Shown here: in pieces, positions 2,503 through 26,465 of the stretch
Numbering within the stretch: position 1 is the first letter of the stretch
How the letters are laid out: every line of letters starts with the position of its first letter
Source: Adineta vaga
Taxonomy: Eukaryota; Animalia; Rotifera
Assembly: GCA_021613535.1 (NCBI GenBank)
Contig: CP075496.1
Coordinates: 8,866,001 to 8,930,000, forward strand
DNA: 64,000 nt
Reading direction: 5' to 3'
Made by a program: the position numbers and the translations under genes
Notes under the pieces: generated by a model
The model's database searches: none
What the model was told of the DNA's origin: nothing
Seen by the model: only the letters and a program-made list of their open reading frames with translations

Positions 2503-3504
2503 TCATCGTACAAGACGAGGATTGTAATGTTCCCATGCTTTACCAATTCTTGTTGGACTACGAGTTGAAGTGATCACACCGATTTGTCGCCGTTGTCGCC
2601 ATAAGCAACATTTTGTTTTCATTTTTGAACGAAGTTCTGATAAAGATAAACAATATACAAATGGAAATAGAAATATAACATTATATGAAAGAAATTTTGT
2701 GTAAATAATTCCATCTCGATTAATTTTGTTCGTTAAATTCAACTGATATATTAGAATAATTACTATCCATGGAATGTTAAATATCATATAGATCGTAGAC
2801 ATTGATAATAATTGAATGGTCATTTTTCGATGTCTACGCCATTGAATTGTTGGACGTATTCGAGTCTTTTGTTTGATTACACGTATAAGAAGTAAAATAC
2901 AAAAACTAATGATGATCAATGTTGGAATAATTTGATGAAAGATTAAATCCCATATGCCTAATTTTGTTCGATCAAAAGCACATGGTATATAAATACCACC
3001 GGTTAGAAAATCCTCGAATGATTTTTCACATGATAGAATAAAATAAACTGTAGAATAGTAAATAAGATAATACATTATTATAATAACAACAGGTAGATAA
3101 TGAATGAATAAACGTTTCCATTTTGTATTTGTCCATTGATCATGAAATATAAGTATATTTCGTTCAATAGTAGCCCAAGCAAATAATCCTACTTGAAGTG
3201 AATAGAATGTATAATCAATAAAGACCCAAATAAGATAAAAGATCGATGATGTTTGCCATGAATTATCATATCGATCATTGTGAAGAATCCATGATATATT
3301 TGTTAATTGATAAAGAAGACTAATTGAAAGAATAACAATAAAAATATGATTATTTATTGCATGACGAAATGTTCGATCATACAAAAGAAAATATAAGTTA
3401 CAAAGAGTACAACTAAGACATAGTATATCCCAAATTAAAAAATACCAAAATCGAAATAAAAGAGGTATTGTAACGAATGATAAATAAGTGCTAGAATTCA
3501 ACAT
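2503..3504 (-). CDS. Intronless orphan rhodopsin-like 7TM GPCR
   Basis: Seven hydrophobic segments, WATIERNILIF (DRY-equivalent), basic loop before TM6, and FPFVY..SLSELR at the end of TM7. ATG of MLNSS at 3504. Confidence 0.8.
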   Translation of the reverse strand: MLNSSTYLSFVTIPLLFRFWYFLIWDILCLSCTLCNLYFLLYDRTFRHAINNHIFIVILSISLLYQLTNISWILHNDRYDNSWQTSSIFYLIWVFIDYTFYSLQVGLFAWATIERNILIFHDQWTNTKWKRLFIHYLPVVIIIMYYLIYYSTVYFILSCEKSFEDFLTGGIYIPCAFDRTKLGIWDLIFHQIIPTLIIISFCILLLIRVIKQKTRIRPTIQWRRHRKMTIQLLSMSTIYMIFNIPWIVIILIYQLNLTNKINRDGIIYTKFLSYNVIFLFPFVYCLSLSELRSKMKTKCCLWRQRRQIGVITSTRSPTRIGKAWEHYNPRLVR

Positions 3505-3677
3505 TAGTATATTGCAATAGTCTTTGAACAATCGATGAAAAAGATAGATTGTTCGTTTATTTTGAAGAAGAAGATCAGAAAAGATTTTATCTCCTTGTAT
3601 GATAAGCTTTTCGAATCCGATTATATATTTGTTTGGAATATAGTATTTAAAATTGCTTCGTTACACTCAAAGAATAG

Positions 3678-3697
3678 ATATATATATATATATATAT
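3678..3697. repeat. (TA)n microsatellite
   Basis: Direct inspection. Confidence 0.85.
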
Positions 3698-4149
3698 GAT
3701 TGTCACACTTTTCAGATACTACAATTCTCTAGTTGAAAATAACTACGTATAGAAAATACAGTTCATTACGATTGATCGAATAAAGATTTGTTATATATTG
3801 TTTTTTACAGTTAAATACCTCGGAATTAATCATTGAGAATTATATCCATGTAGGAAGTGTACCTAACGAACATGTGTATGTATCCTGACTATTGGCTGTT
3901 TGTTTGAATAGTACGTTCTTGAATGAAAATTGCTGAAGTGTAACCGAATCAACATGAAGAAAACGCAAAACATGCACACACACATACATACATAAACGGA
4001 TAAAAAGAAACCTTCATTGATTATACATCATTATATATATATTGATTTTTCTGTAGAAGACTGGTGAAATCATATATCATTCGTTTTGTTTTGTTCACTG
4101 CTACTTTTACACTTATTTCATACATACATACATATATACATAGTTAACA

Positions 4150-5571
4150 ATGATTACACCCACTAGAAATACAACACCAGGGTAGGTATTAAAAATTGTC
4201 TTACTTTTCTTATGATATTTTTTTGTGTTTGGGTGTGATCATCCACAGAACTGCAATAACTCTATGCTGTGTATTCCTGTTTGGTTTAGCTATATCAACA
4301 ACCGTTATTCTTTCATTAATTAGCGTTTATTTGTTAGATAAAAGCGAAGATCTTGCTAAATGTAAGTCTTTTCGTCAATCAAAACATATTTAGATTAACT
4401 CGATAGATAACTCTGATTGAAAATGAATACGAATATCATTCAAAATATGTGTATTCAATAAAAATTTGATAACATTACTAACTATTTTTTAGTAGCAATT
4501 TGTACTCTGTCGTTTGCACGAATCATAACTCAGAATGCTCATAGTGGACCATCATACATAGATAATGCTGATTTTAATCATGATAATATTATAGATCTTG
4601 TCATTGATAATTATAATGATGGTACTTTAACCATTGCACTTGGAAATAGTGATGGTACTTTTAAAAATCAAGTACAAGTATCAGCTGGTGATGGTCAAAC
4701 TAAATCAAATGCATTTGATATCGGTGATATTAATCAGGATGGGAATTTGGATTTAGTTGTCGTTAATAGTGGTACAAGCAATGTTGGTGTACTTCTTGGT
4801 AATGGTGATGGATCATTTGCGACACCGACAAGATATTCAACGGGAAATGGTTCTATTCCATTAGGACTTGCTCTTAAAGATTTAAATGATGATAATAATC
4901 TTGATCTAGTCGTTACAGATAATGCTAATCATGTTGTTTTAATTTTTCTCGGATCTAAGATGGGTACATTTATTTTAACAACAATACTCTCTACTGGCAG
5001 TAACTCAGGACCATATGGAGTCGTTATTGAAGATTTTAATCGAGATACTCAACCAGATATTGGTGTTAGTAATGCTCGTTCGAATCAAGTATCGATATTT
5101 CTTAATACTGGTGCAGTAAATTTTGTAAGTCCGAAAACGTTTTCGACTGGCACTGCACCATATTCAATCATAACTGTTGATTTAAATAAAGATCGAATAT
5201 TTGATATCGTTACTACTAATTATTTCGGACATAGTATCAGTGTACTTTTCGGTAATGGTGATGGTAGTTTTAAAGAACAGAAAATGTTCTCAACAGGCTC
5301 TAGTTCCTTACCTTACTCGCTTTACTTTGGTGATTTCAATAGAGATACAAATATCGATATCGTTGTTGTTAATTCAGGTACCGATAAGATTGGCATATTT
5401 CTTGGAAATGGACATGGTAATTTTCGAATTCAACGGACTTATTCAACTGGTACCGGCACTGTTCCCATTGATGTAAAAGTTGCAGATTATAATAACGATG
5501 GTCGATCAGATATTGTAACTGCAAATTTTAATACGAACACAGTAAGTATTCTACTGAATAATTGTTCATAA
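4150..5571 (+). CDS. FG-GAP/VCBS repeat beta-propeller protein with N-terminal TM anchor; 3 exons
   Basis: Exons ~4150-4181, 4249-4361 and 4496-5571 are joined by in-frame GT-AG introns. About 7 repeats of DFNxDxxxDIVVxNxxxxxVSILLGNGDGxF. Confidence 0.85.
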
Positions 5572-15627: not shown

Positions 15628-16955
15628 CGATCAATAAAATTGATTATCACAATGATGCAGTGAAAATACTAAGAACATTTTGAATAAACGTAGAAACAGT
15701 GGTGATGACCGTTATGGACATACACGAGCATCAAAAACATTATATGGAAATTTGAAACTATCAATATAAGCTATGTTGATAAAAGCTAATTACTACGTAT
15801 ACATCCAAAAGGAATTTTTGGACAGCGCAAGAAGACGTGTTGTTTAGTGTTTTGTGTAAGTAACACTGTAGTAATACTCAACAGTATTGATTTTCATCGT
15901 TTCTCAAGTGTAACTGGTATATTGATGGTCAGTTATCGGCATCCAATTTAATTGTCTGTTGAGATTGACTGTGGACCTGATAATATTATTCTTGCAATAC
16001 ACAATGTAGATGCGATATTAGTTACTCATTTATTTCTATTTTGGTAATAATAACTGTCTCACTATTGAGTAATATAGAGAGTGAAAACTTGGTTCTAGCA
16101 GAAAATCTTTCATATTTTAGATCCATTTGGAAACTTCACATTTATCGGTTTACTTTATTTTACGTATTCATTACTCGTTCAGATTCTTTATTTTTGCTGC
16201 TGTAAGAAGGTGCCATTTATTTCCCGATGTTTGTAATAGGAATTAAATATGAGAAACAGAAAATTGAGTAGAAGTTCATTCTCGTTGAAAAATATTAAAT
16301 GGAGATTGTCTTAAGTTTTGTATTTGACATAATCAACAAGAGATATCATTAATATCTAGAATAATAAGTTTTTCTTTGGAACTGTTCAATAATGACTGAG
16401 GATATTCTCAAGGGAACATCGGATCATCGAGTAATACTTTCGTAATAACTGGATCAATAAATGAATAAACTATTTTTCTACTTATTCATTTTATTCCTGA
16501 AAGAATACATATTCAATTATTCGATGATAACAAGGCATCTCGTCATGTACTAATTGATTGAACTAGTTTATAATATAGAAAAGATGTATTGCATTATCAA
16601 ACAATGATTTATTGACAGTATTATTTAAACACAATTCGAGGCCCGAGTGTTATTGAATAAAACAAGAGACTTTTTCACTGTAACTAATTTATTTTATTAA
16701 TATAGATAACATTGATATAAAGTGTTTCATTCAATGCTATTGTTATAGTCATATTGTATTTTCACTCATACTTGGTACTTATTCAGGGAATGTCTAGAGA
16801 CAAGATGAGAAATTATACATAGAGACGACAACGATGTTCAGTCTTCATTTTAATTCTTATTTTATTTCTATATAAGTGATCTAATTTCTTCGACATCATA
16901 CTCATAGAAAATGGCCTATATTGCTTTTATGTTTTGTTTTTTTCTAGATACTATC

Positions 16956-18502
16956 ATGTCATTATCACCGTGCAAAACAGGACCAGGATATGCTAGTCCG
17001 CTTGAGGCTATGCAAAAGGCACCACATGAAAAAATCATCTACGTTTCTATGTTACCATGTGACGATAATCAACCAAATTATATTGCAACAATTGATGTTG
17101 ATCCTGCGTCTCCTAATTATCAAAAGGTTCTTGATCGAATGTATTTTCCAAATCTTCAAGATGAAATACATCATTATGGTTGGAATGCTTGTTCATCATG
17201 CCATTCAGATTGTACAAAACAACGGCGATTTTTAATTTTTGGTTGTTTGAAATCATCACGAATCTATATTGTTGATACCATCAATGAAAGAAAGCCATGT
17301 CTTTATAAAACCATTGAAGGTGAAGATGTTAAGAAGTTTGATTTAAGTTCTCCACATACAATTCATTGTTTAGGTAATGAAGAAAAGTATCTTCTATTTG
17401 TTGACTTTTCTTTCGAAAATGTTTTTATTTTCTAGCTAGTGGTGAAATTATGCTCTGCTGTTTGGGAAACGCAAACGGTGAACTACCAGGTGGTTTTCTT
17501 TTACTTAGTGAAGAATTTGAAATTGTTGGTCGTTGGAATACAGATGATTTACCATCACCCGCTCGAATTTATTACGATTTTTGGTATCAACCAAGACATA
17601 ATGTTATGGTTAGCAGTGAATGGGCAGCACCAAATGTTTTTGATAAAGGTAAAACTTCTTTTTTCTTTCATTAAATTTACGAAAACTGTGGCGTTCATTT
17701 AGGTTTTAATCCGAATGATGTACCTTTGGGTAAATATGGTCGTCAATTACATTTTTGGGATTGGTCACAACGTAAACATATAAAAACAGTTGATCTCGGA
17801 GCAGATGGATATATTCCACTTGAAACACGTTTTTGCCATGATCCATCAGTACCATATGGTTACGTTTGTTGTGCATTAGGTAGTACAATTTATCGATTTT
17901 TTCAAGATGATGCAAATGAATGGCAAGCAGAAAAAATTATTCAGGTGGATGCTGTCAATGGAGATGATGGACAACCAATACCAGCTTGTATTTCGGATAT
18001 TGTTCTATCAATGAATGATAAATTTCGTACGTAATCTATTTTTTTTTCAAAAAAATTATTTTATTCCTAACGAAATATATGTTTGTTACATTTAGTTTAT
18101 TTTGCTAATTGGTTTCATGGAGATGTTCGTCAATATGATGTTACTGACCCATTAAATCCAAAATTAACTGGGCAAGTTTGGATTGGTGGTTTATTAAAAC
18201 ATGAACATCATTTTGAAGATGGTCGTCCATTAACTGGTGGACCACAAATGTTGCAATTATCACTCGATGGTAAACGTTTATATTTTACCAACTCACTTTA
18301 TTCAGCATGGGATAATCAATTCTATCCGGAAATCAAAGAAAATGGTTCCTATTTAGTGAAAATCGATTGTGACAGTGAAAATGGTGGCATGACATTGGAT
18401 CAAGATTTTTTTATGAACTTTAAAGAAGAACCAAGTGGTCCGACACGTGCTCATGAAATACGTTATCCTGGCGGAGATTGTACATCAGATATTTGGGCTT
18501 AA
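16956..18502 (+). CDS. SELENBP1: Selenium-binding protein 1 / methanethiol oxidase; 4 coding exons
   Basis: GPGYASPLEAM, DEIHHYGWNACSSC, YDFWYQPRHNVMVSSEW, GGPQMLQLSLDGKRLY.TNSLYSAWDNQFYP, and terminal RYPGGDCTSDIW. Three short GT-AG introns join the ORFs. Confidence 0.95.
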
Positions 18503-18681
18503 AAATATATCAATTCAAATTATAAACACTGCTTTATTTCTCTCCTTACGTATTATCATATTTTATCGCTTTTCTATCCCCTTCTAGCTTTTGTAATTGA
18601 ATTTGTGTGCATGTCGATTTAAAGAAAAGAAAAAAAAATCAATAAATGTATTTCTATAGAAAAATATTTTAAATCTAATTG

Positions 18682-21600
18682 TTAAAGAAGAGTATGAATA
18701 AACATTAAGATTTCACAATTCTCGTCAGTTGGTGTCGACTGCAATAGAACTTGCTTCAATTGTTTGACAGTTGCAAACAATAAACTTCCTTGCTCATTAG
18801 GCTCAAGATTGAATGAATTCCATATAGAATTCAAACTCAATTTGACTTTTATAAGTTTTTCTGGTAATTGTAATATCACTTGAGAAGCATCAAGAACAGA
18901 TAAGTGACCATGTTCGTTGATTATTTTATTGAGATAATTATTTTGATCGTTTTCTTTACCTAATACTTTTGGAAATGATAAATAAGTAATACGAGATCGA
19001 AATTCTGCAAGACGTTGACAATCATCACTAAATGGAATATTCAATATTGTCATCAGTTGATTAGCAGCCTTAGTCAACTTCGTTTTAGCTACTAATGTGA
19101 TCGAATCAAAAGTAGCATTATTGTTAGCAGTTGATACTATTATTGTTGTTGGCATCGTCATATATTTAGCTTTGTTTCCACAAGTTTTATAATAATCTAT
19201 TGATTGAATTAAAGTTGGATAGAGTGCATGTAATAATGTAGCCATGCGTTCAGCGATATCAATAACTTCTTGTTCATTACCCGATTGAGTCATTCGACCA
19301 ATGAAAAGTTTATGAAAATCTTCTAGAGTCATTGTATAACAGAGAGCTGTTACTTTACAACTAGGTTGCGTTAAATTAAAAATTTCATTTCCATGTTCAC
19401 CCCAAGTATGTCGTGGTTGATTTAAGAATTCAAAATGAGTACGTGCTGCAATTGTTGAAGCAAGAAAAAGACGCTGTGGATTAGTATCTTTTCCTTGAAC
19501 TCGTAGTAATGGTACATTCATGGCATTCGTTTTACTTGATGTTAAACGAGCTACTTTGGCTTCATGGTGAGCAACAAATTCTAAAGACGTTTCAATTGAT
19601 ATACCACTTAGAAGAAATGTGACCATGCCCAAACGATGCAGAATAGGACTTTCAGCAAGAATCATCACACCAGGACGTGTAACAAATGTACCATCAAAAA
19701 TTTGACCATCACCGGCTTCAATCATTTCTAACATCGTCGACGTATACAATGATTCGTTTGATGTTAATGGACGACCAAGATATTTAACCAATTGTGCTAA
19801 CTGTTTGGTACGATAATCTTCAATACTAAAAATTCGATTGGATATACTTGTCAAGTCTTCGTAATACGTTAGACCTTTATCATAATTGATATAGAATGGA
19901 TCGAATAATGGATAGACTTCAGCATAGGTAATTTCGTCATCATATGAAATGAGATTTTTTTCTGCTAAACAATGAAGATATTGTTCATACATAGAACGAA
20001 CAATATTTACATCATTCATTATCATATTTCCATCAGATAAATTTAACATGTATGTGATAATTTCTTGGCGTACACGATGCGACTCAGACAAAAAGTGAAA
20101 CTTCGAAGTGATAGCCAACTGAGCTGTAATCCATTTTGTAAATGCTTTAAATAGTCGTTTTGGTGCTTCTAATAGAGTTGGAATTTGCATATCTAGAACA
20201 GGACGTACTTTTTTATTGTAAACAATATCAAATACAGCATCAATAAAATCATTGATTTCACCATTAAGAGCATTCGTATGTGTTTCTTTGATTTGAACAA
20301 GAAAGGAATCAATTGATTCGATCTGTTCTACATGATTCAATGTACGCAATGGTTCAACATCTGACCACCATCGAGCCATTTCTTCTGATCGTGTAACCAT
20401 ATTTTCATAGTTATGTTCAGTCCAACGATAATCTTCAGCAAAGAATGGTGCAAACTTTTCTTTAAATTCAATTAATGATGGTGTATTTTTTCCTTGTGGA
20501 AGCATTTGAATGTATGCGGAATCATCTCCACGAAGACAATATTTATAATTAGCTTGAATAATTTGTTTCAAATTATCGATTCGATGATTTGAATCAGTTA
20601 AATCAATATTTAAATCACAAAATAATGGATAAATACGTCGTTTATTAAAATCATAATCAACATTCGATTTTGCTAATCCATCAATTAATAACATGTCAGC
20701 AAGTGCCATTGTTGTTGCTTCGCTTATCATACGCCAAGCAATGTAAGCACGTCGATGAAAAATAGAATTTGTACCTGTAAAGACTAAATCAGGAATAGCA
20801 AAATGACCAAAATCATGTGCCATAAAGGTATCTTCGTGAATAGCATCATTCTTAGCAGTCAATGGTAATCCACCATTTAAACCTGGACTCCAATAATTAG
20901 CTTGTCGACGATTACCAGCTGAACGAAAGAAAATACCTTTATTCAAAACATGTTTAATCAAATTAAGAAAACCATAATCAATAACTTTCGGATTATTATA
21001 TGTAGAATTACCAGCAACATAATCAGCAACATCAAGTGAAAAATCAATAGCTCGTTTAGCTTTTGCTGGTGGATCAAATTTTAAATTAAGTAATGTTTTA
21101 TAATGGATTCTTTGTTTGATAAAAGCAGATATGACCATATCACGAGCAGAATGTTTTATTCCAGCTTCATTTAGTTCTTGATAACTCATACCACTAGCAT
21201 CAACAATAAAAATATCATCCCAACCGAAAACAGACGAATCAATTCCTACAGGTAAATGTCGTCGAGATAGATCAATTTTACCCATTACTGAATGCTTGAA
21301 TTCTGTTCTTATTTTTTCATTAGTTGTATTGTCAAACCAAATGGCAACTAAATTGGCTTGATTAATTACTCGAACACCATGTCGTAGACTGCTTAATTGA
21401 TTTGTACCTGGTCGATATAGATTACTTCGTTCTGTAATCAATGCAAGTTGAACAAGATTGGAAATCTTCTGACATAGCAATAAATCTGCATTTGAATTAT
21501 CAGAATCACTAATAAATGTTGGAGGTACACGAATGATTTCAATACCATAGAGTTTTTCAAAAATTTGTACATGTTCACGATATTTTCGAAGATTAGCAGT

Positions 21601-22365
21601 ACGTAAATAGACTATTCGTCGAACAATGCCAGTACGTCGACCTTGTTTTTCGTTTTCATCGAGTGCACGTTGACGAAATTCAGTAATAATTTTTGTTTTA
21701 TCTGAATCATCCTTCATCGGCAAGTTAGCTTCTAACCATTGATACGAATCGAGATACGTTAATTTTTGTTGTTCGAATGCAATTAATTGAGAAAGAATTT
21801 CTTGATGAATATTTTCAGGAGATTGATCATTGCAAGTTATTTTGATCAATAAATTTCGTGATTCAAGTATACTAACGAGAGGAAGAGTTTCTTGTTGAAA
21901 AACTACATATCGATGTTCAGCAGTTTCATCATTATCATCAGCGCGACCACGACGTTTTCGTCGTTCATCCAATTCATTCTTTGGTACATCGAGATAGATT
22001 GCTGCAAATATTTCTCGATCCAAGTTCAATAAAATATTTTCCAAAATATTAAGATGTGATGGATTTCGAGGATATCCATCTAGGATCATACCTTTTTGAT
22101 ATATTGACTCGTTAAATTTATTCGTAAGAAAACTTGTCGTAAGTTCATTGGGAATCAATTCACCTGTATCCATATAGGTTTTTATCTGTTGACCGAGTGT
22201 ACTATTACTAGCCACTTCACTACGGAAAAGATCACCCGTAGATACATAAGGTCGTTCAAGAACTTTGCTAAGAAGAACACCTTGTGTACCTTTACCGGAA
22301 AGTGGAGCACCAATAAAAACAATTATATTACAATCGAGTAATTGTTGAAGATGAGTTAAAGCCAT
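18682..22365 (-). CDS. Intronless 1227-aa multidomain nucleotide-metabolism protein: adenylate/NMP kinase + Ham1/ITPase-like + unassigned HDxxH domain + ThyX-like region
   Basis: AK motifs GAPLSGKGTQ, STGDLFR, ILDGYPR, RGRADDN. Ham1-like TANLRKYRE, FGWDDIF, KHSAR. HDFGH. ThyX-like VTFLLSGISIETSLEFVAHH, YTMTLEDFHKLFIGR..EQEVIDIAERM, AEFRSRITYLSF..HGHLSVLD. Confidence 0.8.
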   Translation of the reverse strand: MALTHLQQLLDCNIIVFIGAPLSGKGTQGVLLSKVLERPYVSTGDLFRSEVASNSTLGQQIKTYMDTGELIPNELTTSFLTNKFNESIYQKGMILDGYPRNPSHLNILENILLNLDREIFAAIYLDVPKNELDERRKRRGRADDNDETAEHRYVVFQQETLPLVSILESRNLLIKITCNDQSPENIHQEILSQLIAFEQQKLTYLDSYQWLEANLPMKDDSDKTKIITEFRQRALDENEKQGRRTGIVRRIVYLRTANLRKYREHVQIFEKLYGIEIIRVPPTFISDSDNSNADLLLCQKISNLVQLALITERSNLYRPGTNQLSSLRHGVRVINQANLVAIWFDNTTNEKIRTEFKHSVMGKIDLSRRHLPVGIDSSVFGWDDIFIVDASGMSYQELNEAGIKHSARDMVISAFIKQRIHYKTLLNLKFDPPAKAKRAIDFSLDVADYVAGNSTYNNPKVIDYGFLNLIKHVLNKGIFFRSAGNRRQANYWSPGLNGGLPLTAKNDAIHEDTFMAHDFGHFAIPDLVFTGTNSIFHRRAYIAWRMISEATTMALADMLLIDGLAKSNVDYDFNKRRIYPLFCDLNIDLTDSNHRIDNLKQIIQANYKYCLRGDDSAYIQMLPQGKNTPSLIEFKEKFAPFFAEDYRWTEHNYENMVTRSEEMARWWSDVEPLRTLNHVEQIESIDSFLVQIKETHTNALNGEINDFIDAVFDIVYNKKVRPVLDMQIPTLLEAPKRLFKAFTKWITAQLAITSKFHFLSESHRVRQEIITYMLNLSDGNMIMNDVNIVRSMYEQYLHCLAEKNLISYDDEITYAEVYPLFDPFYINYDKGLTYYEDLTSISNRIFSIEDYRTKQLAQLVKYLGRPLTSNESLYTSTMLEMIEAGDGQIFDGTFVTRPGVMILAESPILHRLGMVTFLLSGISIETSLEFVAHHEAKVARLTSSKTNAMNVPLLRVQGKDTNPQRLFLASTIAARTHFEFLNQPRHTWGEHGNEIFNLTQPSCKVTALCYTMTLEDFHKLFIGRMTQSGNEQEVIDIAERMATLLHALYPTLIQSIDYYKTCGNKAKYMTMPTTIIVSTANNNATFDSITLVAKTKLTKAANQLMTILNIPFSDDCQRLAEFRSRITYLSFPKVLGKENDQNNYLNKIINEHGHLSVLDASQVILQLPEKLIKVKLSLNSIWNSFNLEPNEQGSLLFATVKQLKQVLLQSTPTDENCEILMFIHTLL

Positions 22366-22732
22366 ATCAACGTAATACAGTATCGTCTTTATCGAAATAC
22401 AGGCCTGGTTTAGGCGTTATATAGCTCTCACAATGCGGCGTCATAAATTTTCGATTTTTGACGCATATTTATTCATACTTTTTACGTTGAAGTCGAACAG
22501 TATTATACTTGTCATCAAAATAACAACAACAAAACTATGTGCGTATAAGAGAAAATAATAAAAACACAACCGAAAGACCGACAGAAGGTTAAGAAAAAAA
22601 ATCGATATGAATCATCATGACATTATCAATAAGAGAATATGATAAAGAAAACAAAATTGCACAGCTTAGTTTGATTCATGTATGATTTTGTATTTCTCTA
22701 TAAACTATGATAATTTAGCAGGATATTTTCGA

Positions 22733-23611
22733 TCATATATTCATTTTCTTCAAGACAGATGCTTTCAATGGATCTGTAAGTTGAAATAAAGCAATCACAA
22801 CGAATGTCAAAGATAAATTGATAAATACACCTGCGATTCGAAAATGATATTTTGGTGGATCAGTAAAAAATGACATAAATATAAATAATGTATAAGGTAA
22901 ACCAAGTAACACTAGTATTGTTAAGATAATAACTATTTGACGAATCATTTTTAATTCGCGTTGATTTCGATAGAAAGTATATCTTGTTGTAATGCGTGTA
23001 CCAACTTTTGTAACATATCGAATTAATTTTAAATAAATCATTTGAATGATAGTTACCGGTATCAGATAGGCATTGCAGATCGTAAAGAGTAATGAAAAGG
23101 ATAATTTGAGTGGAATTTGACATAATTGATTATTAGCATTGTAAATAATATCACCCGTAAATATAAATTTTGATGGATATAAAAATCCATATACCCATGT
23201 CAAACAAATAAGTAAGAGTTGAATTTTCTTCGTTTGCCAAAATAATTGTGTCGGATAAACAACAATAACATATCGATACAGAGCTTGTAATAAAAATGAA
23301 TAATTCATTATTGCTGTCAGTGTATAACTAAGATAACCTCGAAAGACACAAAATGAATCTTGTCGATCAATTTGTTCGATATCATTAATTAATGAAACAA
23401 TGACCATACTCAATATATTACTTGCCAATAATATTTGAGCTAAAAATGAATTTGCAACTAAAATCATACATATTGTATGACATGTTCTATCGAAGAAAAT
23501 TATGAATAAAAATAGACTACCAAGAAGAATTGATAGAATGAGAAATATCATCATGGTTATATCTAAAGCAAGTAACCATGATTCGAATAGGAGTGTAGAT
23601 GAGATATTCAT
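22733..23611 (-). CDS. Intronless orphan rhodopsin-like 7TM GPCR
   Basis: 7 TM; FCVFRGY (TM3 Cys), QALYRY (DRY-like), RELKMIRQI before TM6, and TDPLK. Likely ATG (MNISS) at 23611. Confidence 0.85.
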   Translation of the reverse strand: MNISSTLLFESWLLALDITMMIFLILSILLGSLFLFIIFFDRTCHTICMILVANSFLAQILLASNILSMVIVSLINDIEQIDRQDSFCVFRGYLSYTLTAIMNYSFLLQALYRYVIVVYPTQLFWQTKKIQLLLICLTWVYGFLYPSKFIFTGDIIYNANNQLCQIPLKLSFSLLFTICNAYLIPVTIIQMIYLKLIRYVTKVGTRITTRYTFYRNQRELKMIRQIVIILTILVLLGLPYTLFIFMSFFTDPPKYHFRIAGVFINLSLTFVVIALFQLTDPLKASVLKKMNI

Positions 23612-24525
23612 AGATGTGACTATGAAAGAAAAAACACGATTTGAAATAAAATAATATGTGATAATCTGTCGCAAGAGGCAAAACCTGTTATATGTTGTTA
23701 TTAATATAAAGATTTTCTCTTTGTTTTCCTTTAATAAATGATGAGATAAACATGAGTGTTTCATTACAAATAACAAAGTTTTATGTACTAATCTTGAAAA
23801 TAATAATCATCTAAAGCAAAAAAGAAGCACAAAACTAGTTAGAATATAAGTAGACATCAAATAATGCATCATTTTATTTTCTACGTGACAGTAATTTGTT
23901 ATTAAATTCTTTTAATCGAGTATATACTCCACGAATATCATTATCATAGAAAGACGCCATTAGCTGCCGTTCATCTTTGTTGCATGTATCATTAATTATA
24001 AACAGTAAGAGAGAGAAACTGCTTGTTAAAAAAGTTAGTTAATTTAATGTGAAAGTAAAAGGTGGATATTCGCTACAATAAAACATGTTTAGAATCGTTG
24101 GTATATATAATACAACAGCGGATGAATCTACAAAAGGAAAGGATGTACGATATTCAAGCAGAAATAAAACTCATATCTATGCTATGGGTAATGTAACTTC
24201 GACAAAATATCTGAATTTTTGGAGATACTGGATGGTTCAATACAGTAACCGATGCATCTGGTGTAAGCACTGGTTTATATATTATCCTTTTCATTCGTAA
24301 CGCATTGACTTCTCAAAAAATTTTTATTGATTCTACGGTTTTTCATACACAAATAGTATTAACATTATTTAGATACGTTCACATATTTATTAATTAAATA
24401 AGATCCAGCAAACTAAAACTAATTATGTGAATATTTGCAATTCTATTGAAAAGCGAACATCATTATTAGTTTCTTTCTTACACGTATTATTACATTAAGT
24501 AAAATAACGAAATGAAATTTAAATC

Positions 24526-26465
24526 TCAATAAACTTTAATCTTCTCCAAAATTGCATTTCGATCATTGGCACATAAATATTGTAAAATTTGTTTATTACG
24601 TTGAATTTCTTTCGAACGTATTTGAAGTGCTAACCATAATTTTTCCATATAGCATTCATATTTACTCATCATTTGTTCCATATCATTTTGCGTATGTTTA
24701 AGAAGATATGCTAAATAAATTGCTGCTTCATAACCCATACTAATCGATTGAAAATAAGGTCCACCCATTGCAGCATCACCTAATAAAACCCAATGTTGAT
24801 TTAGTTCTTGATTTTCAAACGAATGTGTCATTTTCTTGGCACGATAAACTTGTAAAGGAAGAGCAATAAATTCCATTGTATCAAAATGAATTTTATGTGT
24901 TTGTTCAGAAGAAAGATTATTAAGAAATATATTGAGATCATCATAAATATCACAATGATGTTTTTTCAAATAATTATATGTTAATGATTCTCTTTTTGGC
25001 ATTTGTCGAAAAATCGTATCATCAATTGTAATTAAACATGTAACAAGTGTTTGTCTTTTACCTGTTCTATAAGTATCATCAATTGCTGGTATAACACGAA
25101 ATTTTCGAGTATTTCTATTCTTATAAAATTTACATAATTCATTGCATTCATATCGATCATCAAAAGTAAATGTGCAGATAAGAACATATTCAACAAATCG
25201 AAGAAGAAGATTATCTGGTTGAATATGATTACGTAAAACAGAATGATAACCCGTACAATCAACAATAAGAGTATCAGAATAATGTCGAAGTGATTCTAAA
25301 TTTTTACTCATATCATATTGTGCACCAACTGATATTTGACCACCGGATGATGTAAAATATTCTTTTAAAGATTGTTGAATCGTTTGTAAAGGTGTACATA
25401 ATTCTAACCAACTGGTAAGTTTGGTGAAAAGTTTCGATTCAATCGATTCAATCGCTTTTTGACGTTCTTCGATTTGATTTTCAGTAAAGAGATGAATTCC
25501 ACCAGCAAGTTCGTCGGTAGAAAGAATTCCACCCAATAGTTTAACACATCGTGTTCGAGTCATTTCTTCTCGTTTTTCAAGTATTGTCACCGGTATACCT
25601 TGATCACGCATCAAACAACCTAGAAGAAATCGATTTAACAGTTATTTGTCAAGGTTTCATTAGGTTAAAACTCATACCCATTAGAAGACCTGTTGGACCA
25701 GCACCCATAATAAGAACACGAGAAATGCCTGATTTCATTATTTTCGTTGGTATAAATGAAAGATTTCGGAAGGGTGATGCATATGTCCATTGTCTATTGG
25801 CGCTAAACATTTGATAATAACCAAAGAAGACATTTTTACCTAGAAGAATCGTAGAAGAATATATGAAAATTAATTTTATTGATGATCTTACCGTTAGATT
25901 GTGATATATATTGTCTATTTCTATTAGTAGTAACAGGTTTCTTTTTCACAGAAATAAGAGAATCCCATGCAATATGTTCACTTTGTTCTACCGATAATTC
26001 AACGGCCATTGGTTCAGTTATTAGTTTGAGTTCTTGTTTAAGTTCCTGAACAGTTTCTTTCAATTGTTTTAAATCATCTTCAACAAGATCTTCGGTTTCT
26101 TTTAAATGAACAATTCTATTTGAAAATTGTGCCAATTTGAGTGTAAGTTCGGCTCGTTTTGGACATAGTAATTTCACTTGTTGACGAGCTTGTTCCGCTA
26201 CTTGCATTACTTTGTCTATCATAGTTCGTTGCCATTCATCAATTTGTAATAAAACATTCTTAGAGGAATCATCACGCAAATCTATTCGACTAATTTGTTC
26301 TTGTAAACTATTACGTTCTTCTATATAGATATTTAATTCATTGAGTAAACCATTATGATGTTCCTTAAAATGTCTCCGACAAAAGTATGATTTACATCCT
26401 GCACATAGACATGTTCCAGATCGTTTGGTATTAGCGCACATTGAACATTTGTTAGATGTGGTCAT
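24526..26465 (-). CDS. B-box/coiled-coil domain spliced to a FAD-dependent oxidoreductase/monooxygenase; 3 exons (alternatively two genes, the second starting at ATG 25738)
   Basis: Exon 26465-25892 (CSMC..CLCAGCKSYFCRRHFKEHH + coiled coil); 52-nt intron 25891..25840; open frame into VLIMGAGPTGLLM; short intron; then IVDCTGYHS and LLGDAAMGGPYFQSISMGYEAA FAD motifs. Confidence 0.75.

Follow-up and report, generated by a model that had tools for sequence, protein, structure and literature searches.

Genomic locus and gene integrity

The window analysed here, a 64,000-nucleotide stretch of the bdelloid rotifer Adineta vaga (assembly GCA_021613535.1, contig CP075496.1, positions 8,866,001 to 8,930,000), carries at window positions 18682-22365, on the minus strand, an open reading frame (ORF) that begins with ATG and continues for 1227 amino acids (aa) to its stop codon without internal interruption. 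The encoded protein joins four modules in a single chain: a nucleoside monophosphate (NMP) kinase of the adenylate kinase family, a Ham1/ITPase-like module, an all-alpha domain that we call X, and a domain with the fold of the thymidylate synthase ThyX. An earlier prediction, made from the DNA letters of the window, had described one uninterrupted, intronless 3.7-kb ORF of four such parts, and both statements hold. No joint falls inside the ORF in RNA-type contigs, and the modules are recovered by Pfam, NCBIfam and Protein Data Bank (PDB) matches for the kinase, by profile for the Ham1-like part, by an AlphaFold2 (AF2) model for X and by structure for the ThyX fold. A chance origin is ruled out because 1227 codons stay open in DNA of 30% GC.

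The ORF is present as a single copy in its own genome (100.8 Mb in 6 contigs, with the window on contig 4), its GC content (~0.32) matches that of the flanks, and an identical protein is recorded on a 15.2-Mb contig. Runs from 8 studies of the same organism contain this stretch of the window. When contigs were aligned to positions 17600-23400, a DNA run provided depth in 30 of 30 bins, covering the ORF as well as the flank on either side; this coverage came in several pieces, none of which spanned the whole. Two RNA-type runs covered ~18570-22450 only; the run type is assigned by software as a guess, with which the gene-confined coverage and one splice joint agree. The neighbouring gene (16911-18502, plus strand) encodes the selenium-binding protein SBP56 and has at least 3 exons: Pfam positions 1-143, 217-317 and 318-452 lie in separate ORFs, and an RNA-type contig lacks a 54-nt GT..AG intron at 17647-17700 (joint 17646>17701). 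Because this neighbour is split, the intronless state of the four-module gene stands out. The orthologue of Adineta ricciae is likewise intronless and syntenic, with SBP56 on one side and an FAD-binding oxidoreductase on the other, and the orthologue of Rotaria magnacalcarata is intronless as well. Comparison with A. ricciae yielded ratios of nonsynonymous to synonymous substitution rates (dN/dS) of 0.11 for the kinase, 0.18 for the Ham1-like module, 0.14 for X and 0.16 for the ThyX-like module, at dS values of 0.7-1.0. Purifying selection acts on all four modules.

An intronless, foreign-looking gene in an intron-rich animal genome could also be a contaminant or a chimeric join of the assembly, a concern that the original prediction had itself raised. 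However, the 15.2-Mb contig, the flank-like GC content, the adjoining intron-bearing SBP56 gene, the depth of an independent DNA run in all 30 bins across ORF and flanks, the recurrence in 8 studies, the synteny in A. ricciae and the Rotaria orthologues rule this out, and we regard an assembly artefact as next to impossible. We conclude that the gene genuinely resides in this genome, is transcribed and is under constraint in each of its four parts.

Domain architecture of the protein

Module 1 (aa 13-195; 21781-22329, minus strand as for all parts of the gene) is an adenylate-kinase-family NMP kinase with a short LID. Pfam ADK (PF00406) matches aa 18-170 at E 8.5e-33 and 114 bits, compared with a gathering score of 26.8, and adenylate kinases of the PDB match at E 3e-28, the best solved relatives being short-LID enzymes. 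With adenylate kinase proper, such as the short-LID ADK of Mycobacterium tuberculosis (1p4s), the module shares the overall profile, the P-loop (here GAPLSGKGTQ) and the NMP-binding and LID arginines; in the kinase alignment (A1), K25 and the Arg/Asp positions R48, R100, R135, R141, D143/D144 and R152, which include the catalytic ones, show little or no variation. Unlike these enzymes, it misses every equivalog cut-off of the NCBIfam adk models, which span aa 15-193 and score 140 bits at best against a cut-off of 187, and it is attached to ~1000 further residues. In addition, His104 occupies the position of the Gln that specifies adenosine monophosphate (AMP), the adenine-reading residue, which is Q92 in the E. 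coli enzyme. Among 28 fusions, this column contains H20 N5 Q2 G1, so that Gln is replaced by His in 20 of 28. The replacement hints at a kinase substrate other than AMP. A linker (aa 196-244; 21634-21780) extends from the Pfam ADK envelope to the point where standalone Ham1-like+X proteins begin; its dN/dS against A. ricciae is 0.23.

Module 2 (aa 245-432; 21070-21633) adopts a Ham1/ITPase-like fold, as recognised by comparing a profile of 62 homologues (A4) with the PDB: the best match is KomB (8zsg, E 1.3e-10), followed by ITPases at E 3.5e-9 to 4.5e-5. The window protein alone meets TIGR00042 of NCBIfam at E 0.054 only and reaches no Pfam or NCBIfam threshold; Pfam Ham1p_like is above its cut-off in the homologues P0127, P0151 and L009. 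In common with the ITPA/RdgB/Ham1 family (PF01725), the module has the fold and the motifs T-x-N-x-x-K-x-x-E, FGWDxIF and K-x-S-x-R, which read TANLRKYRE, FGWDDIF and KHSAR in the window protein. Across the 62 sequences K261, E264, W382, D383 and the specificity Arg, R408, are invariant, and E312, F380, K404 and S406 are conserved in at least 88%. In contrast to canonical ITPases, which keep a catalytic Asp, the module carries Arg313 (codon 21427-21429) at this position, as seen in alignments to KomB, 8ji1 and 4f95, where Arg313 is paired with D72 of human ITPA and His65 of KomB. The column is variable in the family (E18 T15 R7 Q7 K4 S3 D2 A2), and the module is always fused to X. Profile-profile alignment (hhalign) of the Ham1-like module with the small canonical Ham1 of a Vibrio operon returned a probability of 9%. 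Of the Ham1/ITPase module originally predicted, the fold and the binding motifs are retained; because the catalytic Asp is absent, a binding module appears more likely than a pyrophosphatase.

The best solved relative by sequence, KomB, is the dITP (deoxyinosine triphosphate) sensor of the Kongming system (8zsg; PMC13454610), and both proteins keep the residues that bind purine nucleoside triphosphates (NTPs) and have lost the catalytic Asp. This likeness suggests a second reading, in which the protein is a Kongming-like immune module in one chain: kinase and ThyX-like domain would make a base-modified NTP, the dead Ham1-like module would sense it, and X would be the effector. Kongming signalling requires an NMP kinase (bioRxiv 10.1101/2024.12.20.629578), which the window protein possesses, and the sporadic distribution over bacteria, viruses and eukaryotes, prone to horizontal gene transfer, would fit as well, as would the AbiEii-RNA-ligase gene that adjoins the Aquimarina locus described below. 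However, the residue replacing the Asp in KomB, His65, is an invariant His in defensive HAM1s (bioRxiv 10.1101/2024.12.20.629578), whereas the rotifer protein has an Arg at a variable position at which none of the 62 sequences has a His. KomB is partnered by the SIR2 NADase KomC, whereas the module studied here is fused to X, and neither SIR2 nor another known effector was found among the annotated neighbours or among 25 of the 64 families in a tally of 70 further neighbours. PADLOC gave no match for the protein or its standalone homologues, the transporters, HAD protein and phosphoribosyltransferase (PRTase) of the operons look metabolic, and phages and giant viruses themselves carry the module. 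We consider an immune role of this kind decidedly unlikely.

Module 3, the X domain (aa 433-868; 19762-21069), follows the Ham1-like module in almost all homologues. Its AF2 model is an all-alpha, discrete unit of 436 residues (predicted local distance difference test, pLDDT, 95; predicted template modelling score, pTM, 0.93). G477, H517, D518, H521, E549, D645, W648, N652, W666 and Q749 are invariant columns, R486, R487, K505, R545 and R576 form a set of nearly invariant Arg/Lys residues, and D507, D526 and D557 are also invariant or nearly so. A putative metal site comprises H510, H517-D518-x-x-H521 and E549 (aa 510-549; 20719-20838), all invariant columns in two alignments (A2, with 65 sequences, and A5); in the model, H517-H521 (HDFGH) and E549 belong to two successive helices (76-91 and 103-134). 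Zincins combine HExxH with a downstream Glu; in the HDFGH of X, Asp takes the place of the catalytic Glu. Searches of Pfam, NCBIfam, PHROGs and PADLOC with the whole protein and standalone homologues found no match to X and no defence or phage family; the X profile against PDB sequences returned noise only (TolC, E 0.37), and the structure search against PDB and Atlas gave no PDB match and no named Atlas cluster. Weak shape matches to peptidase clusters were seen in the Atlas (template modelling scores, TM, of 0.2-0.48), and in BFVD just two uncharacterised Tupanvirus proteins matched. COQ4 (HDxxH-x11-E) and the HD domain were dropped as candidate relatives, as neither gave a Pfam match at E <= 1 or a structural match.

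Module 4 (aa 869-1227; 18685-19761) contains a ThyX-fold core at aa 884-1066 (19168-19716), which corresponds to model range 16-198 in comparisons with whole ThyX chains and with the UMP/dUMP methylase PolB (4p5a). The likeness to the ThyX fold holds at the level of structure. In profile comparisons, Pfam Thy1 (PF02511) scores 18.4 bits on the window protein and does not reach its cut-off of 24.8, standalone ThyX-like relatives encoded beside Ham1-like+X genes are marginal (21.7-27 bits), and hhalign gives a probability of 1% for these standalone proteins (A6) against canonical ThyX (A7), compared with 100 against the fused domain. The signature AHHEAKVARLTSSKT stands where ThyX has RHRxxSxxxxSxRY, meaning that the RHR...SxRY motif is swapped for AH-x-EAKVARLTSSKT; alignment to M. 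tuberculosis ThyX places A-H-x-E opposite R-H-R-H and T-S-S-K opposite SxRY, with R1024 retained. RHR...SQRY was present in 3 of the 4 canonical ThyX sequences fetched for comparison.

The order of segments is altered as well. A segment of ~75 aa comes after the first strand in canonical ThyX, and likewise in standalone ThyX-like proteins, whereas fused forms carry it C-terminally, in the window protein at aa ~1089-1165 (AEFRSRITYLSF...HGHLSV; 18871-19101). This part is homologous to ThyX ~34-86 and weakly matches M. tuberculosis ThyX 34-86 directly. Accordingly, standalone ThyX-like proteins have ~55 extra residues after the first strand relative to the fused domain, and the matches of their hidden Markov model along each of the fused forms run in the order [4-36][101-253][30-104]. 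A metagenome-assembled genome (MAG) of Bdellovibrionales (JAGRAT010000075.1, locus L008, 3571-8231) encodes a 495-aa tandem ThyX-like protein with one full copy and a partial copy devoid of the segment. This tandem, a possible intermediate, suggests that the translocation arose by duplication followed by complementary loss. Both ThyX and PolB (PF02511; PDB 2af6, 1o26 and 4p5a) differ from module 4 in motif and segment order, and the similarity to them stays below the Pfam cut-off. The thymidylate-synthase homologue of the original prediction is therefore correct with regard to the fold; with the signature lost and a segment translocated, flavin chemistry is doubtful.

Each of the three modules with a known fold thus fails a functional feature that defines its family: the kinase has lost the AMP-specifying Gln, the Ham1-like module the catalytic Asp of ITPases, and module 4 both the motif and the topology of ThyX. 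This bears on the reading of the protein as a routine housekeeping enzyme in which adenylate kinase, ITPase and flavin-dependent thymidylate synthase are joined. Source annotations of the homologues ('adenylate kinase', 'hypothetical' or similar, and in one case 'thymidylate synthase ThyX') would agree with such a role, and the ADK motifs are intact. However, each of the losses just named speaks against it, as do the scores below all NCBIfam adk equivalog cut-offs and the separate ThyA and ITPA genes of the rotifer and of every bacterial host examined. The rotifer genome encodes its own ThyA, as expected for a metazoan, and has two loci for canonical ITPA, on contigs 3 and 6, and a Pfam scan of this genome produced no Thy1 match; all 5 of the 5 bacterial genomes carrying the system have ThyA and none a canonical ThyX. 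Given that the host genomes keep ThyA and ITPA, we do not take the protein for a housekeeping enzyme, a role that seems very improbable. Contig 6 of the rotifer also contains a further Ham1-like match with internal stop codons.

Distribution and gene neighbourhoods

Searching aa 200-1227 against 1.84 billion representatives (clusters at 50% identity) returned at least 694 clusters with E <= 0.001, of which 341 reached E <= 1e-30, mostly ~580-aa proteins that consist of the Ham1-like module and X (Ham1L-X). Among the 182 homologues fetched, Ham1L-X was the commonest architecture (97), followed by ADK-Ham1L-X-ThyXL (39; ThyXL, ThyX-like), Ham1L-X-ThyXL (15) and X-ThyXL (13), with one Ham1L-X-ADK and others. 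Named sources include A. ricciae, R. magnacalcarata, the amoebozoans Pyxidicula, Soliformovum and Protostelium, a Patescibacteria MAG and Chromera; bdelloids are the sole animals among these named matches. GTDB genomes with X belong to Bdellovibrionales (one with a full 1335-aa fusion), Vibrio, Legionella, Saccharibacteria, Aquimarina and Algicola. Another full-length homologue lies on a 505-kb contig, which is eukaryotic given the talin, DENN, RPN7 and DBR1 genes around it, and some homologues are found on giant-virus-like contigs, adjoining YqaJ and the uracil-DNA glycosylase UDG. The full architecture therefore occurs beyond A. vaga, in other bdelloids, Amoebozoa, giant-virus-like contigs and Bdellovibrionales. 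Consequently, the architecture is not unique to this animal; the suggestion that it is undescribed stands, in that neither the architecture nor the X domain nor the ThyX-like subfamily turned up in our literature searches.

Two observations concern the viral and virus-like contigs. In three related giant-virus-like JACCD... assemblies (L018, L031 and L040), a fusion of 1143-1156 aa is syntenic with UDG (226 aa), a YqaJ-like recombinase and an Arf/Ras GTPase. The 911-kb IMG/VR contig 3300042923_001726 (L013, 9212-12301) carries Ham1L, X and a C-terminal ADK over consecutive plus-strand ORFs with intron-like interruptions, giving the order Ham1L-X-ADK, compared with the kinase-first order of the window protein; this 'viral' contig may be eukaryotic, or the gene may be split.

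Bacterial and phage loci frequently encode the same parts as separate genes. The locus of Legionella sp. D16C41 contains POT/MFS, Ham1L-X, Formyl_trans_N, ThyX-like, HAD and guanylate kinase genes; the Vibrio and Algicola loci contain ADK, Ham1, Ham1L-X, a TLC nucleotide transporter and MFS; and the Aquimarina locus contains endonuclease V (EndoV), AbiEii-RNA ligase, Ham1L-X and ThyX-like genes. MazG, followed further on by Ham1L-X, ThyX-like, Ham1 and EndoV, is found in a phage-like locus (L015), Ham1L-X, ADK, Formyl_trans_N-MazG and ThyX-like in L035, and a purine-type PRTase, an RrnaAD-like methyltransferase, Ham1L-X and ThyX-like in L048. Overall, a ThyX-like gene, an ADK gene or both lie no more than 3 genes away in 13 of the 19 standalone loci for which 4 or more neighbours were scanned, and a small RrnaAD-like methyltransferase of the S-adenosylmethionine-dependent type is present in 8 loci (adjacent in 7, fused to Ham1L-X in 1). 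The recurrent fusions and adjacent genes, seen in many independent loci, support a functional link between the kinase, Ham1-like and ThyX-like parts, as had been proposed for them. The complex prediction for the Ham1L-X and ThyX-like pair of L015 scored 0.00, which says nothing about binding either way.

Because of the partner genes for a methyltransferase and a formyltransferase, a third reading stays in play, namely biosynthesis of a modified nucleotide (a viral hypermodified DNA or RNA base, a nucleoside natural product or a signal) by conversion of NTP to NMP, modification of the base by the ThyX-like domain, with these partners where they occur, and re-phosphorylation by the kinase, in the manner of T4-type phage pathways or of gene clusters for nucleoside antibiotics. 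On the other hand, the eukaryotic fusions have neither methyltransferase nor formyltransferase, PolB retains the ThyX signature that module 4 has lost, canonical Ham1 and EndoV as neighbours suggest removal of odd purines rather than their production, and there is no sign of modified DNA in bdelloids or amoebae. We hold this possibility to be unlikely, yet worth keeping in sight. Phage T4 makes its modified nucleotide with the dCTPase gp56, the dCMP hydroxymethylase gp42 and the dNMP kinase gp1, which are separate proteins. The T4 pathway and the system described here both combine an NTP-handling step, a thymidylate-synthase-like base-modifying step and an NMP kinase step. The folds of T4 differ (MazG-like, ThyA-like and T4 dNMP kinase), and the window protein is fused, has the additional X domain and belongs to a system that also occurs in cellular eukaryotes.

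Individual loci show further arrangements. Between the ADK and ThyX-like genes of L035 lies a 378-aa fusion of Formyl_trans_N with a MazG pyrophosphohydrolase (3426-4559, plus strand). The Ham1L-X protein of L008, next to the tandem ThyX-like protein, has 1058 aa, including an N-terminal extension of ~470 aa with an RrnaAD-like methyltransferase region. In Algicola sagamiensis DSM 14643 (L011, 9485-11244), Ham1L-X is split into overlapping ORFs of 307 and 282 aa within an operon collinear with that of Vibrio sp. Of7-15; a frameshift, a pseudogene or a sequencing error is possible.

Phylogenetic origin

In a tree of the Ham1L-X region (IQ-TREE, LG+G4, 47 rows, with about half of the fetched proteins left out), the bdelloids form a clade with support of 100/100, whose sister (90/70) is a clade containing Pyxidicula and Soliformovum. 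These bdelloid and Amoebozoa clades are nested in clades of full-length fusions (98/98 and 99/98) that include the eukaryotic talin contig, and bacterial and viral forms fall outside the full-fusion clades, on which FastTree agrees. The root of the tree is not fixed and many rows are unlabelled metagenomic proteins. The simplest reading of this placement would be that the bdelloid ancestor took up the gene, with an amoebozoan-like eukaryote or a virus infecting such a host as the donor. This uptake is older than the split between Adineta and Rotaria. A foreign origin had been suspected from the DNA alone, and the restriction to bdelloids among the animals with named matches, together with the nesting in an Amoebozoa-rich clade, supports it. 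As for the donor, which was to be sought by phylogeny, an amoebozoan-like eukaryote is more likely than a directly bacterial source.

A model for nucleotide processing in a single chain

We favour the view that the gene encodes a horizontally acquired, single-chain enzyme that sanitises, salvages or converts a non-canonical, probably purine, nucleotide, and give it a slightly better than even chance. The constant core would be Ham1L-X. In the first step, the Ham1-like pocket would recognise a non-canonical NTP, probably a 6-oxo or 6-substituted purine; as in KomB, the pocket is kept and the catalytic Asp is lost, which argues for recognition rather than hydrolysis. X, the best catalytic candidate, could then perform the chemistry through its putative His/Asp/Glu metal site and its conserved Arg/Lys residues, which might provide a phosphate-friendly surface. 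The resulting monophosphate would be bound or modified by the rearranged ThyX-like domain, which is devoid of the motif for flavin and deoxyuridine monophosphate (dUMP), and the product would be re-phosphorylated by the kinase with its His in place of the AMP-specifying Gln. Given that the ThyX-like and kinase domains are the commonest partners of the core, handling at the NMP level and re-phosphorylation might belong to one process. As a net result, an odd nucleotide would be sanitised, salvaged or converted, as opposed to synthesis of thymidylate (dTMP) or housekeeping hydrolysis of ITP. Sanitation or salvage of purine nucleotides is what the neighbouring genes suggest, which encode canonical Ham1, EndoV, MazG, UDG, PRTase, guanylate kinase and nucleotide transporters.

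Several points weigh against this sanitation and salvage model. The modules, their conservation and co-occurrence, transcription, selection and phylogenetic placement are observed, whereas the ligand, the order of the steps and catalysis by X are what we infer from them. X is without a recognisable relative, which makes its chemistry guesswork; the Ham1-like module may have no activity, in which case conversion of NTP to NMP rests on the role proposed for X; and the ThyX-like domain could serve for structure or binding only. The accessory genes (methyltransferase, formyltransferase, transporters and EndoV) vary by lineage, and the pathway may therefore differ between lineages, while the giant-virus-like standalone copies often occur without a partner gene nearby. 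For the runs that indicate transcription, the guessed RNA type has as its support one spliced joint (X11) and the confinement of coverage to the gene.

The pathway as such stands a genuine chance of being new. If the model is correct, the Ham1-like+X core would define a large uncharacterised family of at least 694 clusters (50% identity), and it would represent a second lineage, besides KomB, in which the ITPase fold has lost its catalytic Asp and kept its pocket. ITPase-derived modules for nucleotide recognition might thus be more widespread. It would further add a ThyX-fold subfamily without the flavin/dUMP signature, in which the fused forms underwent segment translocation and a tandem intermediate is preserved in Bdellovibrionales. 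The recurrent gene set (NMP kinase, ThyX-like protein, RrnaAD-like methyltransferase, formyltransferase/MazG, Ham1, EndoV, PRTase and nucleotide transporters) could serve as a handle on a nucleotide pathway common to predators, intracellular bacteria, phages, giant viruses, amoebae and an animal. With regard to bdelloids, the gene is a clear example of non-metazoan origin that is both expressed and constrained, with a donor that was likely eukaryotic. A bolder version, to which we assign a low but not negligible chance, holds that the Ham1-like+X core and its partners constitute an unrecognised cross-kingdom system for non-canonical purines, working either by 'repair instead of discard', in which a damaged or modified NTP is turned again into a usable nucleotide, or by Kongming-like signalling, in which a dead ITPase module senses a base-modified NTP that the system produces and a new effector fold responds, and passed from microbes or giant viruses to amoebae and bdelloids.

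Additional features of the locus

Upstream of the four-module gene, the minus strand of the window contains two further ORFs with no Pfam match at E <= 0.001: one of 347 aa (22733-23776), which is hydrophobic and looks multi-pass, and one of 362 aa (24526-25614). At the places in A. ricciae that correspond to the 347-aa and 362-aa ORFs, a 258-aa gene and an FAD_binding_3-type gene are located. The intergenic stretch directly upstream of the gene (22656-22689) shows a 32-bp deletion in a DNA contig of an independent run, and biallelic single-nucleotide polymorphisms are numerous across the ORF, in DNA and RNA-type contigs alike. Both the deletion and the polymorphisms are likely to reflect allelic or strain differences.

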